Assembly: GCF_000142905.1 (NCBI RefSeq)
Contig: NW_013657646.1
Coordinates: forward strand, 182,367 to 246,196
DNA length: 63,830 nt
Reading direction: 5' to 3'
From: Thecamonas trahens ATCC 50062
Lineage: Eukaryota; Protista; Apusomonadida
The position numbers and the translations under genes were made by a program. Positions 13,476 to 48,807 of this stretch are shown here, in pieces; the stretch's first letter is position 1, and each line of letters starts with the position of its first letter. Below the pieces are notes generated by a model that saw nothing but the letters and a program-made list of their open reading frames with translations, did no database searches and had not been told where the DNA came from.

Positions 13476-14574
13476 TCATGTCCACAGGCCGGCCGGCTTG
13501 TTGGACTCGGTCTGCCGGCCAGGCAACGGCGGCAGGGTCGACGGACGGTGCTGTGGGTCGTGCTGCAAAGAAGGGTCCTGCGGCAGGGGTGTGCCGGTCT
13601 CGGCGTCGCCACCGCTTGCAGGCGCGATCTTGGCGGCGGCCTTGTTCTTGCGGTGGTGGCGGAAGAGGAGGGCGGCGCAGATGCAGGCGCCGAGGAGGAG
13701 CGACCAGGTAACGTAGAACTTGTACGACGACGGGTTGAACGGCTGCGAGGCGTCGGCAATGCGCTGGCGGATGGAGCGAGCCTCCTCCGGCGAGGAGCAT
13801 GTGAGGCCGACGGTGTTTGCCGGGCAGAGGCACTTGTTCGGCGCGATGCAGGCGCCGCCATTGAGGCACCTCGGCGAGCAGACTGGGGTGCAGACGTGGC
13901 TTTCTGTCGAGTCTGCAGTCTTGTTGTACCCGTCCATACAGGAGCAGGTATTAGGGGCGGTGCATGTGGCGTTGGCGCATGCAGGGCTGCAGACTGGGGT
14001 GCAGACCGACGGGGAGCCAGTCCAGAAGCCCAGCTCGTTGCAGCGGCGGGTCTGCGATCCCGAGCGGGTGTATCCGGTCGAGCATGAGAAGAAGCACGAA
14101 GAGTTGAACATGGTTGATGCTGCTGGAGTGCACGCCATCAGGCCGCCTGGCACAGCAGGGACCAGCGGGCCGCAATCGATGTCTATCAGCTTAGTGCCAC
14201 AGTCGGCCATGCCGTAGCCCGCATCACACACACAGTTGTTGCTCACGCACGACGCATTGACCTTGCACTCGGGCGTGTTTGACGCTGTGCAATAGTTGCC
14301 TCCTTGCCCTGTCATCAGCATCCCCCTCTTATGTCGGTAAGTCCTCCCTGCCCTTCCTCGGACACCTCGTGTCCCTTCCCCCCACCCCCCTTCCCGCCAC
14401 CCCTGGACCCAGCCACACACACACCCACCGACAGGCGATCACCGAGGTGGACAGAGGCGGTACGAACGCATACTACGCCATCTCCCGCACGCACATACCC
14501 AGACTGAGTGGTACAAGAGCTAGGACAAGAGCCGCTCCCAATATGGCCACCCACAGGCATGTATTGAGAGCCAT
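13476..14574 (-). CDS. Type I membrane protein with EGF-like and Sushi/CCP domains; 2 exons (14574-14499, 14308-13476)
   Basis: Exon 1 encodes signal peptide MALNTCLWVAILGAALVLALVPLSL; phase-1 GTATGT..CAG intron; CVCDAGYG, CSTGYTRSGSQTRRCNELGFW, CLNGGACIAPNKCLC; TM VTWSLLLGACICAALLF. Confidence 0.82.
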
Positions 14575-14748
14575 GGGTGCCGAGTCCTGTCTTGCTCATC
14601 CTTGCAAACGGGTGAATGGCTGGCAGGCAGTGGCACGAAGGGTGGAGGGTGGGGGGGGGGGGGGGTAGAGGCAACACCTGTGCGGCATGATGGTGGGCAG
14701 GTGAATGGATGATGTGCAGGTGGATGATGGCCATTCATCATCATCATC

Positions 14749-15274
14749 ATGGTGCTGATGTGGGCGATCCGTCTGCCTGTCATCATCATCGTCATCTTCA
14801 TGGTGCTGATGTGGGCGATCCGACTGCCCGTCATCATCATCGTCATCTTCATGGTGCTGATGTGGGCGATCCGACTGCCCGTCATCATCATCGTCATCTT
14901 CATGGTGCTGATGTGGGCGATCCGACTGCCCGTCATCATCATCGTCATCTTCATGGTGCTGATGTGGGCGATCCGACTGCCCGTCATCATCATCGTTATC
15001 TTCATGGTGCTGATGTGGGCGATCCGACTGCCCGTCATCATCATCGTCATCTTCATGGTGCTGATGTGGGCGATCCGTCTGCCCGTCATCATCATCGTCA
15101 TCTTCATGGTGCTGATGTGGGCGATCCGACTGCCCGTCATCATCATCGTCATCTTCATGGTGCTGATGTGGGCGATCCGACTGCCCGTCATCATCATCGT
15201 TATCTTCATGGTGCTGATGTGGGCGATCCGACTGCCCGTCATCATCATCGTCATCTTCATGGTGCTGATGTGGG
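14749..15274. repeat. Tandem array: 10 full copies + partial of a 51-bp unit
   Basis: Unit ATGGTGCTGATGTGGGCGATCCGACTGCCCGTCATCATCATCGTCATCTTC starting every 51 nt from 14749; only three variant positions. Confidence 0.97.
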
Positions 15275-15345
15275 GGAGCTGGTCATGATGGTGTCTAGCC
15301 GCATGGGCATGATATCCCGGTATCATTCCTAGGTGGCTCGAGCCA

Positions 15346-17115
15346 ATGAGTGCAGACCAATGCGTTTGGGTGGACGCTGTCGGAGCCACTACTCGTCCCG
15401 ACACCATGGAACAGGCGTCCAAAGGGCTCGGCGGGCCGTTGTACAGCCCGCAGATACAGCAGTTGCAGCGCGGGAGCAAGAGACGAGGATCGCGGACGTT
15501 GCCGTTGCCGCCGGTGCTGGTGGGCGGGCCCGAGGTGGTGTTCAAGGTCCGCGCCCTCGACGGCCGCTCCTGGGTCATGGTGGCCCAGCACGCCGAGGAC
15601 CTCTCCTTTGCCGCTCTCATGTCCGCCGTCTATGCCGCAGACCACAGCTCAGCCTATGCCCGCAGAAAGTATCTGTTCTGGCTCGACGGCGACGGCGACG
15701 TTATCCGCATCGCGTCGTCAGACCACCTAGTCGCCGCCGTCGCTGACGCCCTCCGTGCTCGCATTGCCGCAGCCCGCGCCGCCATCGTCAGCCTCCAAGC
15801 CAGGGAGCTGGCGAGGGCCAAGGCCAAGGGGAAAATCAAGGGCAAAGGCAAGGGCAAGGCCAAGTCCAAGGCAAAAGCCAAGGCCAAGGCCAAGGCCAAA
15901 GCCAAGGCCCTCGCTCGTCGTGACGGTATTGACCTGCATCAGCCGCTCAAGATCAAGCTCTATCTGCGCAAGTCGCACGTCCCGCCACCGGCGCCGGTAC
16001 CTTCTGCCAAGGCCGAAAGTCACACACGCTCGCATCGGCGCAGTGACCACTTGCAGTCGCGCCCACAGAGCGATGGCCGCGAGAACTTGGTCGGCGCGCC
16101 GCAACTCCCTCACCCCGACCCGCAACACACAGGCTCGGCGCCGCAGCCCACCAGCACGCCAGTACCAGTGCCACCCCCATCAGCGCCCAGTGTGCCCATC
16201 GCAGCTGGTGGTCCGCCACCGCCACCGCCACCGCCACCGCCGCCGCCGCAGCCGTCTGGGTCAGCGGGAGGCGCGCCACCACCACCGCCACCACCGCCGC
16301 CTCCGCCGCCAGGCACCGGCTCGAGTTCTACCGGCCACACGGCAAGTAACCTCATGGATGCCATCAAAGCCGGCAAGCGACTCAAGACCGTGGACGAGTC
16401 GGCCAAGAAGGCCAAGGCCAAGTCGCCGCAGTCGGATCTTCTGGCGTCGATCCAGGGGCTCGACAAGAACTCGGTCCTGCGCAAGGTCTCGCCCGAGGAG
16501 ATCGCAGCCAAGCCAAAGCGCGAGCTGACCGGGCGCGAGCTGATGATGGCCAAGATCCGCGCAGGCGCCAAGGAGCAGCTTCGCGAGGTGACGGAGGAGG
16601 ACAAGAAGAAGCCGCCGCCCAAGCTCGAGGGCCGCGACCTGATGATGGCCATCATCCGCGACAAGCCCGAGCTGAAGAAACTCGACCGCGCCTCCATTCC
16701 GCCACCCAAGAAGGAGGTCACCCCACGTGACGAGCTGCTCCAGTCGCTAGCCGCCGCCAAGAAGCTTCGCAAGGTCAAGCCGAAGGAGACACCCACGCTT
16801 CTCGGCATCACGCCCGACCTTATGGGCGGGCGCGGCTTCTTTGGCGTTCGCAAGATGGATCTCGTCGATGGCCCGCTGCCGCCCTTGGAGGCGCCGGCTC
16901 CTCCGCCTGCGGCAGCTGGGCCAGCTCCCACGCCCGACACCGACAGCAAGGCCGAGATCAGCGGCGGAGGTGGCGACGCTGATGCCCCGCCCCCTCCTGC
17001 CTCCCCGCCTCCTGCAGCCGATCCTCCTCCGCCCCCCCCGGCCCCCCCGGCCCCCCCACCTCCCTCCCTCACTGTCACCACCGCCAGCGAATCTCCCGGC
17101 AATCCGGCCGAGTAA
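15346..17115 (+). CDS. PB1 domain + Lys/Ala basic tract + polyproline + five tandem WH2 motifs (actin-binding protein)
   Basis: PB1: VVFKV..FWLDGDGDVIRIASSDHL. WH2: LMDAIKAGKRLKTV, LLASIQGLDKNSVLRKV, LMMAKIRAGAKEQLREV, LMMAIIRDKPELKKL, LLQSLAAAKKLRKV. Start codon uncertain. Confidence 0.8.
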   Translation: MSADQCVWVDAVGATTRPDTMEQASKGLGGPLYSPQIQQLQRGSKRRGSRTLPLPPVLVGGPEVVFKVRALDGRSWVMVAQHAEDLSFAALMSAVYAADHSSAYARRKYLFWLDGDGDVIRIASSDHLVAAVADALRARIAAARAAIVSLQARELARAKAKGKIKGKGKGKAKSKAKAKAKAKAKAKALARRDGIDLHQPLKIKLYLRKSHVPPPAPVPSAKAESHTRSHRRSDHLQSRPQSDGRENLVGAPQLPHPDPQHTGSAPQPTSTPVPVPPPSAPSVPIAAGGPPPPPPPPPPPPQPSGSAGGAPPPPPPPPPPPPGTGSSSTGHTASNLMDAIKAGKRLKTVDESAKKAKAKSPQSDLLASIQGLDKNSVLRKVSPEEIAAKPKRELTGRELMMAKIRAGAKEQLREVTEEDKKKPPPKLEGRDLMMAIIRDKPELKKLDRASIPPPKKEVTPRDELLQSLAAAKKLRKVKPKETPTLLGITPDLMGGRGFFGVRKMDLVDGPLPPLEAPAPPPAAAGPAPTPDTDSKAEISGGGGDADAPPPPASPPPAADPPPPPPAPPAPPPPSLTVTTASESPGNPAE

Positions 17116-17225
17116 ACGCCTTCCTTTCCTTGCTGTCGCCGGCCGCCGGGCCTGGCACCCGGTCACCGCCACCGCCCACCCGCAGGCTCACCCGTCGGCC
17201 CACACTCACCTCACTCGAGCTCGCC

Positions 17226-17919
17226 ATGGCGGCAGCAACCATAGCGGCACTCGAGGCCGAGACGGCGGCACTCCGTGCGCGTGTGGCCGCGCGACGTCCG
17301 CTGGTGGCGCTATTGGCTGGCGAGGCGGACTCGGGCGACGGCGGGCTGGCGGCGGCGGCCGACATGGCCGGCGCGGCGGCGGCGCTGAGCGCGGCCGGAG
17401 CCCGGACGACAGATGTGGCACGCGGGATGGTGCGGCTGCGGCTGGATCGTGATGTAGCTGTGGCTGAGGCTGCTGAGGCCGGCGCACGTGCTGCTAGAAT
17501 GGTGGCTGATGCTGCAGACGCCCGCGTGGCGGCGGACGACGCGGCCACGCGTTTTTGTGGCGGCGGCGGCGGCTGCGGGCGCACAGGCGGCGGACGACGC
17601 CGATGATGCTGCCAAGAGCCAGTATCTACGGGCCAAGGCTGGCGAGTATGCTGACGCCGTCGGTGAGATGGAGGCGCGGATAGAGGCGCTGGCCATTGAC
17701 GGCCGCACGCATCCACAGCTGACGGCGCTGGCCGCCGAGCTCGCCGACGTCCGCAGCGAGCTTGAACCGCGGCTCAAGCGGCTGGAGGCCTACCGCGACC
17801 TCCCACCGGACTTGCATCTGGCGTCGGTGGCCCTCGTCCGCGCCCGCGAGCGGCTGGGCGTGCTGGAGGATGAGATCGGTGCCCTCATTGCCGGCATCCG
17901 GCCGTCGTTCGACGAGTAG
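17226..17919 (+). CDS. HAUS1/augmin subunit 1-like protein; apparent frameshift at T-run 17552-17556
   Basis: C-terminus LEPRLKRLEAYRDLPPDLHLASVALVRARERLGVLEDEI resembles the HAUS1 C-terminal motif. Two ORFs join on removing one T. Confidence 0.6.
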
Positions 17920-46660: not shown

Positions 46661-48807
46661 TTACTTGAACGAGAACCTCACCTTGACCAGGTAGCGGATG
46701 ATGACTTGCGACTCGTCGTAGACAACAAACTCGTCGTAGAGGAGCGACGAGTCTGTGTCGAGCCTGGCCGGCACTGGCTTGCCGAGCGGGACTCGGACAC
46801 CGTTGCTCATCTTAAAGACGTGCTTGGGATTAGTCCGCGTCTTGCCCTCGCCGTGGGTCGAGTGCGTGCCCGGTGGTGGGCCGTCGAGTGGCTCGGCAGC
46901 GCGTGCCTTGTAGCTCGTTCCGAGCGCAAACTCGGCGAGGACAAGGAGGCCTACGTCGGCGGTCTTGGTCGCCCAGCAGTACTGCGCAGCCTTGGACACC
47001 ATGTCGGTGCCGTAGATGCCCTTGCCAAACATGTAGCCGGTGACAGGCGCTTCGGCGGCGCGATGCGGAGACCTTGCCGGAGGATGCCGACCATGTTGGA
47101 CATCCGCGTCCCGTGCCAGAGGAGGGTGCGGTTGGCAAGCGCGCCGTGGGGCGCGTAGCGGGCAGATGCACCGGCACGCTCGACCTCGAGGATGTCGAGC
47201 ACCTCGAGCGAGTACCGCTTGTGGGTCGGGGCGTGTGTGTTCTTGGCATACATCCGAATCATGGTGTCGACGTCCGAGCCCGGCGCCACCGGCGCCATGG
47301 TTGTCTGTAGCATGTTGTACCGCGCGGTGATCGGATGGAGGCCCGATGAGGTCGCCACAGACTTGAGGCTCTTGGTCGTGGCCTGGATGTCCGACAGCGC
47401 GTCCATGAGCTGGATCTTGGTTTTGAGCATGTCGATCGAGTCGATGACCGGCGGTCGCCGCATGCCGAACACGTGCGGCACGAGCGTGTAAAAGTTGGAC
47501 GAAAGGTCGGTGAGCACGTGACGCCGGCCCGGCCCGTTGAGCTCGTCCTCGATCTCCTTGAGCTTGGCTCGTCCCTTGCGGACGTGCGATTTTTTGAGCT
47601 TGCCCAGCGGAAGCTTGTTGGCGTCATAATCCATGCTCATCACCCGCGACGTCGTCGAGTTGAGGTCGCAGATCATCTCCACCACTGCCTGTACACTCAG
47701 CGGAAGGCCGCACGACGGCCCGTCGTCCTGATCGTCATCGCCGCTTCCACCTGCTGTCGCGGCGGCCGTCAGCGGCTTGGCTCGCTTCGGTGGCGGCACC
47801 GGTACCATCGCTGTCGCTGCCGCTGCCGCCACAGGCTTGCCCGCCAGCAAGCCTTCCAGCCATGACGCCGGCACAACCGGCACGCCAAGGCTGAGCGCCG
47901 TCTGTTCCTTGACCGTATTCGAGCCGGGGTTGGCAGTAACCAGGTAGTCAACGCTGGACGAGACCGACGTGACAACCGAAGCCCCAGTCGCCGCAATCTG
48001 CTTCTCAAGCTTGTTGCGGACAGTGCTAAACCGACCAGTGAGGCAGAGACAGAGGCCGGCGATCGAAGTCGGGAGTGCCGCACTGGCTGGAGCTGCCGGC
48101 GGCGACGGCTGCCGCTTGCGCTTCTGGCGTGCTCCTCGTGATTGAGCGGCCACGCCCGTTGCCTCAAAGTCGGCCTCGTCGGCACGCTTTCCGCCGGTCA
48201 CCGCCGCCGCCAGCCAGGCCTCGGTCACCACAAACGCCGACGTTACCGACTGGAACTTGGGCGGCGGCTCGACACCGTCCGGCAGGACGACGTGTGAGAC
48301 ACGCGCCGCCGAGAACCGCTTCACCACCTCGGCGCCGAGCGCCTCGGCCGCCGCCGAGAGCGCTGCCTTGTCGTCGGCAAACGACTCACCACGCGGCGCA
48401 TGCAGGAACAAGCAGCAGTCCTCGAGCACCGTAGACGCTGTGGCCGATGCTGCTGCCGCCAAACGGCCTGGCCCCGCTGTCGCAAGGGTCGCTGCAGCAG
48501 GTCCGCTGGCGGTTGCGCCGGTCTCCTTCAGCGAGTGCGGGGACCAGTCGACGAGCGCGCCGGCAGCAACAGCCGCAGCAAGCCAGTCCTCAGACACAAC
48601 CGGGACCGAGAGCGCCGTGGCCTTGCGGATCTTCTTCGAGTCCTTGGCCACATCGTCGGGCACAGCCATGACGTAGTCGACGTCTGCCGTGCAGACAAAG
48701 GTCGCTGTCCCGCCTGCAGCCTCGACCGCTGCCGCAGCGTCCTGGCGCGGACCAAGGCCGGCGTACTTGGCCGACGCCACGCACACAGTCACGCCAGCCA
48801 AAGCCAT
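46661..48807 (-). CDS. Poly(ADP-ribose) polymerase: 3 BRCT + regulatory HD + catalytic domain; apparent frameshift near 47054
   Basis: BRCT cores VPVVSEDWL, FVVTEAWL, VPVVPASWL; KLPLGKL, SNFYTLVPHVFG; LLWHGTR, LRIAPP/EAPVTGYMFGKGIY, LYDEFVVYD. Confidence 0.93.

Follow-up and report, generated by a model that had tools for sequence, protein, structure and literature searches.

A Thecamonas gene predicted to join a PB1 domain and polyproline runs to a Spire-type WH2 array

The DNA analysed here is a stretch of 63,830 nucleotides from the apusomonad Thecamonas trahens ATCC 50062 (GCF_000142905.1, contig NW_013657646.1, positions 182,367-246,196 of the forward strand), drawn from an assembly of 131 contigs and 28.7 Mb. 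We refer to this whole stretch as the window, and coordinates are window positions unless another contig is named. Its plus strand carries a gene whose predicted product, the PB1-WH2 protein, joins an N-terminal PB1 domain to a basic and proline-rich linker, two polyproline runs and five tandem WH2 motifs. An earlier note on this DNA had described the open reading frame (ORF) at 15346-17115; that ORF exists, and translation places all of the elements listed for it in the same frame. What is new relative to that reading is a colinear correspondence, linkers included, between the WH2 array and units WH2-B, WH2-C and WH2-D of the actin nucleator Spire. The combination of PB1, polyproline and Spire-type WH2 is a credible candidate for a new design of actin-assembly factor.

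The window has a GC content of about 65%, and long ORFs are present in all six of its frames. As listed, the ORF of the PB1-WH2 gene opens at an ATG at 15346 and encodes 589 residues. We place the start at the ATG at 15406 because GC at codon position 3 jumps there, from 0.55 over 15346-15405 to 0.82-0.88 from 15406 on, and because that codon lies in the context caccATGG. The resulting 569-residue form is thus more likely than the longer one, and residues are numbered from its first Met. The parts encoding PB1 and the WH2 motifs keep a codon-position-3 GC of 0.80-0.92. The gene apparently consists of a single exon in a GC-rich protist genome that is poor in introns, as marked by the FH2 domains of about 19 formins encoded elsewhere in it, which read through without interruption. 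We read the locus as a real gene carrying a previously undescribed combination of domains (Table 1).

Table 1. Features of the PB1-WH2 gene, with window coordinates and the evidence for each.
Feature	Position	Strand	Description	Evidence
Coding sequence	15406..17115	+	569 aa + stop, uninterrupted	ORF list, start context, codon-position-3 GC, PB1 and WH2 in frame
PB1 domain	15529..15798	+	aa 42-131; predicted	Pfam, hhalign, alignment, AlphaFold2, Foldseek
β1 Lys K47	15544-15546	+	codon; in 'VVFKV'	translation, paralogue alignment
OPCA-like loop	15679-15729	+	W92-L108	translation, paralogue alignment
Basic K/A/G tract	15811..15909	+	aa 136-168	translation; tandem repeat beneath
Pro/Ser/His-rich linker	15979..16209	+	aa 192-268; low complexity	translation; no Pfam family
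Polyproline run 1	16213..16248	+	aa 270-281; 12 Pro	translation; TRF repeat 16213-16247
Polyproline run 2	16276..16311	+	aa 291-302; 12 Pro; 13 aa ahead of WH2-1	translation; TRF repeat 16274-16310
WH2-1	16351..16392	+	aa 316-329; ...LKTV	best Pfam WH2 stretch, regular expression
WH2-2	16438..16488	+	aa 345-361; ...LRKV	regular expression; colinear alignment with Spire fragments
WH2-3	16540..16590	+	aa 379-395; ...LREV, 'ELT' ahead	BLASTP against P0006, P0041 and P0034; unit scores
WH2-4	16639..16683	+	aa 412-426; IRDKPELKKL	PDB Spire match 3ue5_B; unit scores
WH2-5	16735..16776	+	aa 444-457; ...LRKV, then KPKETPTL	phmmer against PDB, BLASTP, unit scores
C-terminal Pro/Ala-rich tail	16786..17112	+	aa 461-569; no recognisable domain, no Trp, weakly acidic	translation, Pfam

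The C-terminal array was analysed at the level of motif, unit and whole alignment. A regular expression for a helix followed by L(K/R)x(V/L) finds five motifs between 16351 and 16776, with starts 29-34 residues apart and with the successive endings LKTV, LRKV, LREV, LKKL and LRKV. The Pfam WH2 model (PF02205, cut-off 23.1) scores 31.0 bits over two stretches when the array is excised and 23.0 bits, just short of the cut-off, when the ORF is taken whole, so that the five motifs noticed earlier at about 16350-16776 are recognised as WH2 by profile as well as by pattern. The same regular expression matches 0.23 times per 1000 residues in the six-frame translation of the window, corresponding to about 0.04 expected matches in the 167-residue segment where 5 are observed, and 0 of 5000 shuffles of this segment gave three or more. 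Tandem Repeats Finder (TRF) detects no tandem repeat of about 96 bp in the DNA of the units, indicating that they are old and diverged. In a phmmer search of PDB sequences, the polyproline and WH2-1 segment aligns to the polyproline and WH2 end of leiomodin-2 (E 5.9e-8), and WH2-4 and WH2-5 match the Spire WH2 construct 3ue5_B (E 2.3e-4), with N-WASP behind at E 0.07.

A HMMER search of 1.84 billion representative sequences returned 38 matches at E ≤ 1e-3, none below 1e-10 and none over the PB1 domain. The sole significant matches confined to residues 349-496, which hold WH2-2 to WH2-5, were three sequences, P0006, P0020 and P0034. P0006 (E 1.8e-5) is a KIND and WH2 protein of Drosophila, Spire itself; P0041, a cluster mate of P0020, includes the final part of a KIND domain, while the same hallmark sequences are seen in P0034. 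By BLASTP the alignment to P0006 has 38% identity and 60% positives over 94 residues with two gaps (pairwise E 5e-14) and spans three WH2 units together with their linkers, as do the alignments to P0041 and P0034.

Scoring the units individually, we found reciprocal best matches between WH2-4 and WH2-C and between WH2-5 and WH2-D in each of the three Spire sequences, and between WH2-3 and WH2-B in two of the three. WH2-5 scores 72 against Drosophila WH2-D, compared with at most 46 against its own sister units. In type, WH2-4 resembles Spire WH2-C, with a proline in its loop, and WH2-5 resembles WH2-D. WH2-2 occupies the WH2-A position by colinear alignment, with weak similarity to WH2-A itself. 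WH2-1 has its best unit match in Spire WH2-D, the most canonical type, and reads as a generic polyproline-adjacent WH2. Common ancestry of an already differentiated cluster would predict a colinear, unit-specific pattern of this kind, which suggests that WH2-3, WH2-4 and WH2-5 share ancestry, position by position, with Spire WH2-B, WH2-C and WH2-D.

The resemblance to SPIRE extends to a tandem cluster with a period of about 30 residues, for which nucleation, sequestration and severing through actin monomers strung longitudinally would be expected, and to the 'ELT' lead-in, the proline-containing WH2-C loop and the 'ETPTL' that follows WH2-D. Beyond the cluster the two proteins differ. SPIRE has KIND at its N-terminus where the PB1-WH2 protein has PB1; SPIRE has a Spir-box and FYVE_2, which are lacking here, and a GTBM was likewise not recognised; and the PB1-WH2 protein has a fifth WH2 behind two polyproline tracks that Spire does not possess. 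The SPIRE family is defined by KIND, a WH2 cluster, a myosin-5 globular-tail binding motif (GTBM) and FYVE_2 (Kollmar et al. 2024, PMC11231147), the GTBM being short and poorly conserved even among holozoans (PMC11231147). We considered whether the protein is a true SPIRE or a 'SPIRE-like' protein, for which KIND is required, and rejected both assignments: it contains no KIND at E ≤ 10 and no FYVE_2. A six-frame scan of the whole genome likewise yielded no KIND candidate, although the method is sensitive in this genome, having found PB1, WH2 and FH2 there.

SPIRE is reported across Holozoa, with a loss in Capsaspora, and not in other eukaryotes, and a KIND-WH2 'SPIRE-like' protein is described from Physarum (Kollmar et al. 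2024, PMC11231147). The host of the present gene, Thecamonas trahens, lies outside Holozoa. The ancient holozoan SPIRE was inferred, without outgroup evidence, to have had three or four WH2 domains, and the paper makes no mention of Thecamonas, Apusozoa or PB1 (PMC11231147). As read from its domains, the protein is neither a new SPIRE member nor a categorically new system; it is best described as a predicted Spire-type WH2 module on a new chassis rather than a wholly new nucleator. The claim in the earlier note that the architecture is unrecognised survives in part: no paper or protein combining PB1 with WH2 was found, but three of the five motifs match Spire colinearly.

For the N-terminal domain, PB1 (PF00564) is the sole fold family matched in Pfam, with 17.4 bits for the whole ORF and 20.3 bits for the N-terminal 165 residues against a cut-off of 23.6; in a six-frame scan of the genome nine loci lie above this cut-off, and the PB1-WH2 locus reaches 21.5 bits. 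When the lone sequence was compared by hhalign with a profile of 10 PB1 domains from the same genome, it matched with 93% probability (E 3e-7). AlphaFold2, supplied with the paralogue alignment, produced a β-β-α-β-β-α-β model with a predicted local distance difference test score (pLDDT) of 87 and a predicted template-modelling score (pTM) of 0.76. A Foldseek search of the PDB with this model returned solved PB1 domains as all of its top 7 matches, with NBR1 at a template-modelling (TM) score of 0.80 and with aPKC/Par6, MEK5, p40/p67phox and p62 also among the PB1 neighbours. A phmmer search of PDB sequences with the PB1 region gave no match. We consider a PB1 fold highly probable.

Aligned with ten PB1 domains of the same genome, K47 is the single invariant column, and the acidic loop, which reads W-L-D-G-D-G-D-x7-D over residues 92-106, lines up with the OPCA motifs of the paralogues. 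Compared with the OPCA motif Y-x-D-E-D-G-D-x8-D/E-x-D/E, the loop reads W-L-D-G-D-G-D-x7-D-H-L, with Gly and His at two usually acidic positions. The domain is very probably a PB1 with a basic face provided by the β1 Lys and a candidate acidic, OPCA-like face. An N-terminal PB1 with two faces, marked by a β1 Lys and a DGDGD-x7-D loop, had been proposed before; both landmarks are located by translation, at K47 and residues 92-106, and the PB1 assignment is now very probable by Pfam, hhalign, alignment, AlphaFold2 and Foldseek together.

Besides this one, the genome encodes at least nine PB1 proteins, a repertoire in which kinases and scaffolds predominate and which includes a TPR-PB1 protein, two Kelch-PB1-kinases, a PB1-kinase, CBS-PB1-TPR, Arm-PB1-EF-hand and SAM-PB1 proteins and an NBR1-like protein. 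The two Kelch genes (L010, C9:469750-472980; L016, C26:165575-168802) each hold a Kelch β-propeller, PB1 and a protein kinase in one open frame, an architecture that, to our knowledge, is not recognised from characterised kinases. Two further fusions are also unusual: the armadillo repeats, PB1 and EF-hand pair lie at L014 (C72:12575-15754), and the CBS domains, PB1 and TPR at L011 (C56:37642-40878). Known PB1 scaffolds (p62/SQSTM1, NBR1, Par6/aPKC, TFG) resemble the PB1-WH2 protein in the predicted fold of its N-terminal domain, in the basic interaction face and, putatively, in the acidic one; neither a paper in the full-text searches nor a protein in the sequence searches was found to join PB1 to actin-binding WH2.

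Between the two domains lies a series of low-complexity segments. The K/A/G basic tract reported in the earlier note is present at residues 136-168 by translation and stems from the hexanucleotide GGCCAA, repeated in tandem 15.7 times (15816-15909; TRF), and both polyproline runs are encoded by CCGCCA-type repeats. There are two runs, as had been noted before, but each has 12 prolines by translation and not the 10-11 given then. The low-complexity linkers may be recent expansions, and the microsatellite-derived K/A/G tract and polyproline runs may vary in length between strains. At the other end, Pfam finds nothing at E ≤ 10 in the C-terminal 111 residues, which include no Cys; the absence of Cys and Trp and the low acidity of the tail indicate that it contains neither a zinc finger nor an Arp2/3-activating CA end.

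Searches for relatives of the whole protein were negative. No protein with both PB1 and WH2 was matched in the sequence-similarity search of the 1.84 billion representatives; word-index homology searches, run with the full-length sequence and separately with its PB1 and WH2 regions, found no relative, nor did a scan of metagenome contigs. A protein search of the Thecamonas genome itself gave low-complexity matches only and no paralogue, and neither the 569-residue nor the 589-residue form is present by exact-sequence look-up in a collection of 15 billion proteins, an absence of little weight, since records of this genome may be missing from it. In full-text literature searches for PB1 with WH2 or with actin nucleation, both terms co-occur only in unrelated contexts. 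The earlier note had named a match to an already characterised family as a possible refutation of novelty, and these literature and sequence searches found no such PB1 and WH2 family.

Among other actin regulators, Cordon-bleu (Cobl) has a similar overall layout, in which an N-terminal ubiquitin-like (β-grasp) domain is followed by a middle part rich in Lys and Pro and then by tandem WH2 at the C-terminus. The β-grasp domain scores as PB1 here and not as the PF09469 of Cobl, however, and the five evenly spaced motifs of the PB1-WH2 protein differ from the three of Cobl, which include one long linker; sequence similarity to Cobl is limited to proline-rich segments. PF09469 is absent from the protein and from the genome scan, and membership of this family was rejected. 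VopL/VopF also combine proline-rich stretches, several WH2 and a self-association domain, a role for which PB1 is the candidate here; they are bacterial effectors with three WH2, their VCD dimerisation domain is C-terminal and bears no relation to PB1, and the searches showed no similarity in sequence. The idea common to such proteins is that a string of WH2 motifs becomes an efficient nucleator by oligomerising.

Ena/VASP, leiomodin and the WASP family share with the PB1-WH2 protein a polyproline segment directly 5′ of WH2. The PB1-WH2 protein lacks their EVH1/WH1, GBD, Tmod/LRR and tetramerisation domains and their CA end. We rejected a WASP-family nucleation-promoting factor, as the protein has no CA region, no Trp in its tail and no WH1, PBD/GBD or SCAR domain, and likewise a formin, as it has no FH2 and none of the 19 FH2 loci of the genome is on the contig of this gene. 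The earlier statement that FH2 and an acidic-Trp C-terminus are absent was correct by Pfam and translation. At other loci the genome encodes a genuine WASP (WH1, PBD and two WH2) and an Ena/VASP in addition to its formins, a cytoskeletal gene set typical of amorpheans. The WASP-family proteins of Thecamonas have been catalogued, all with VCA ends, and the PB1-WH2 protein differs from them in having none (Kollmar et al. 2012). Two further loci combine SH3, PBD (CRIB) and a weak WH2 (L032, C30:244908-247967) and SH3 and WH2 (L028, C64:132756-135824); these are possibly WASP-without-WH1 (WAWH)-like proteins, reported in Thecamonas (Kollmar et al. 2012), or other small actin regulators.

The reading we favour, and hold with moderate confidence, is that the gene encodes a modular actin-assembly factor composed of a PB1 domain, a basic and proline-rich linker that is long and flexible, two polyproline tracks and five WH2, three of them of Spire B/C/D type. 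Tracks of 12 prolines match in length those to which profilin binds in formin FH1, VASP and WASP-family proteins. In such a factor, the polyproline tracks would capture profilin-actin and might feed it to WH2-1, and the WH2 array would arrange four to five actin monomers in a row on a single strand, in the manner of Spire. At low occupancy or ratio the array would seed filaments; at high occupancy or ratio it would sequester monomers or destabilise filaments. PB1 would set the location of the arrays and the number acting together, the part that KIND/formin and FYVE/Rab binding play in Spire, through either head-to-tail self-association or docking on another of the PB1 proteins encoded in the genome, which include several kinases. 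The binding and nucleation of actin, the recruitment of profilin and any oligomerisation through PB1 are putative activities.

Several points weigh against this reading. The PB1 scores stay below the Pfam gathering threshold (17.4-21.5 against 23.6 bits), and since the confident AlphaFold2 model was built on an alignment of PB1 paralogues, which biases it to the PB1 fold, we hold that fold to be probable and not proven. The single-sequence AlphaFold2 model is poor (pLDDT 49), although its element order, β-β-α-β-β-α, is the same up to α2. The last PB1 strand could be 'AIVSLQ' (residues 126-131), as modelled, or 'LKIKLYL' (residues 181-187) beyond the K/A insert, and hhalign with a longer N-terminal query is compatible with either segment. 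Because the WH2 motifs are short, the match to Spire could partly reflect convergence on equal spacing. Because they derive from microsatellites, the K/A/G tract and the polyproline runs may be labile in evolution. An orthologue was found in no collection searched, so that conservation lends the reading no support; apusomonads are under-sampled in those collections, which makes the lack of relatives weak evidence. Finally, tandem WH2 proteins are often weak nucleators or act mainly as sequesterers.

More specific or competing roles can be weighed against the same evidence. The one that fares best, though we would put it forward only tentatively, is a signalling adaptor in which PB1 forms a heterodimer with a PB1 kinase or scaffold (a Kelch-PB1-kinase, PB1-kinase, TPR-PB1 or NBR1-like protein) that recruits or regulates the WH2 array. 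The predominance of kinases and scaffolds in the PB1 repertoire of the genome is consistent with this role, as is the established knowledge that heterotypic pairing is the commonest PB1 mode, illustrated by solved complexes among the Foldseek matches. No link points to any particular partner, however, and the role is compatible with the modular assembly factor favoured above.

Somewhat more doubtful is the model of the earlier note, a self-polymerising nucleator in which a type-AB PB1 would make p62-like head-to-tail filaments that cluster WH2 arrays on a membrane via the basic tract. Landmarks of both PB1 faces are present, with K47 invariant and the D-x-D-G-D-x7-D loop aligned with the OPCA motifs of paralogues; p62 and AtNBR1, whose PB1 domains form filaments, are among the structural neighbours; and tandem-WH2 nucleators such as VopL/F and Spire-formin are established to gain activity on dimerisation (PMC11231147). 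The Gly and His of the OPCA loop count against polymerisation, however, most two-faced PB1 domains act in heterodimers, for which at least nine other PB1 partners exist in the genome, and the basic tract is a microsatellite product whose membrane role is only putative.

We think it unlikely that the protein is instead an elongation or monomer-delivery factor, whether Ena/VASP-like or a buffer like ciboulot, tetrathymosin and actobindin, that feeds profilin-actin to barbed ends or sequesters G-actin. The polyproline placed right before WH2-1, as in VASP, WIP, N-WASP and leiomodin, would suit such a factor, about 19 formins, a WASP and a VASP are already encoded in the genome, and Spire WH2 clusters at high concentration sequester monomers and depolymerise filaments (PMC11231147). 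Yet the array matches the nucleating WH2-B/C/D of Spire, and no EVH1, F-actin-binding or tetramerisation motif was found by Pfam. Sequestration and severing take a single WH2 domain, and nucleation takes at least two, with potency rising with number such that four are far more potent than two (PMC11231147).

That the ORF is non-functional, either a chance product of a genome with 65% GC or a low-complexity pseudogene in decay, is highly improbable: long ORFs do occur in six frames, no orthologue was found and three segments are microsatellite-encoded, but non-coding DNA rich in GC would hardly yield a Lys-rich WH2 array with a PB1 domain, codon-position-3 GC is high across both, the 569 codons run without stop or frameshift, and the Spire matches are significant.

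Upstream of the PB1-WH2 gene, the minus strand carries a gene for a Sushi/EGF membrane protein (13476-14420), which is followed by a 51-bp tandem array (14735-15274). The ORF of the former encodes a Sushi/CCP repeat and EGF-like repeats and then a hydrophobic segment, resembling an animal-type adhesion or receptor membrane protein. The array, within an ORF at 14749-15288 (+), comprises 10.6 copies at 97% identity, shares the frame of the PB1-WH2 gene, has GC of 0.46/0.24/0.93 by codon position and encodes a 17-residue ultra-hydrophobic repeat. We rejected it as a part of the PB1-WH2 gene: in-frame stops precede the ATG at 15406, and no convincing splice sites were seen. Downstream is a homologue of HAUS1 (augmin subunit 1; 17130-17919, +; Pfam 41 bits against a cut-off of 40), divided between two ORFs, 17130-17606 and 17488-17919, that overlap and differ in frame, which implies a short intron or an assembly frameshift. 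Farther along, at 46951-48804 (-), the window encodes a PARP with BRCT domains and PARP regulatory and catalytic domains; the catalytic match breaks off at the end of the ORF, and an intron therefore probably follows.

Tandem-WH2 nucleators are few (Spire, Cobl and VopL/F), and how oligomerisation or partners boost their weak intrinsic nucleation is debated. The predicted PB1-WH2 architecture comes from one gene in one genome. According to the most recent survey, SPIRE arose in Holozoa, and Physarum has a single KIND-WH2 precursor (PMC11231147). A wider scenario, which we regard as rather unlikely in its full form, is that the differentiated Spire-type WH2 cluster, with its positions A-D, predates both Holozoa and the fusion to KIND and survives on another chassis in an apusomonad, where head-to-tail assembly of a type-AB PB1 would make it a multivalent, profilin-fed nucleator. 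If this were true, a head-to-tail PB1 nucleator would be an independent answer to the need for dimerisation that Spire meets by binding formins. If the Spire-type reading is true, a differentiated WH2 cluster would be pushed back toward the root of Obazoa/Amorphea, and the cluster would prove to be mobile, a module able to join up with various targeting or oligomerisation domains. As a natural construct of 569 residues, the protein is suited to asking whether valency achieved through PB1 polymerisation would suffice to make a strong nucleator.

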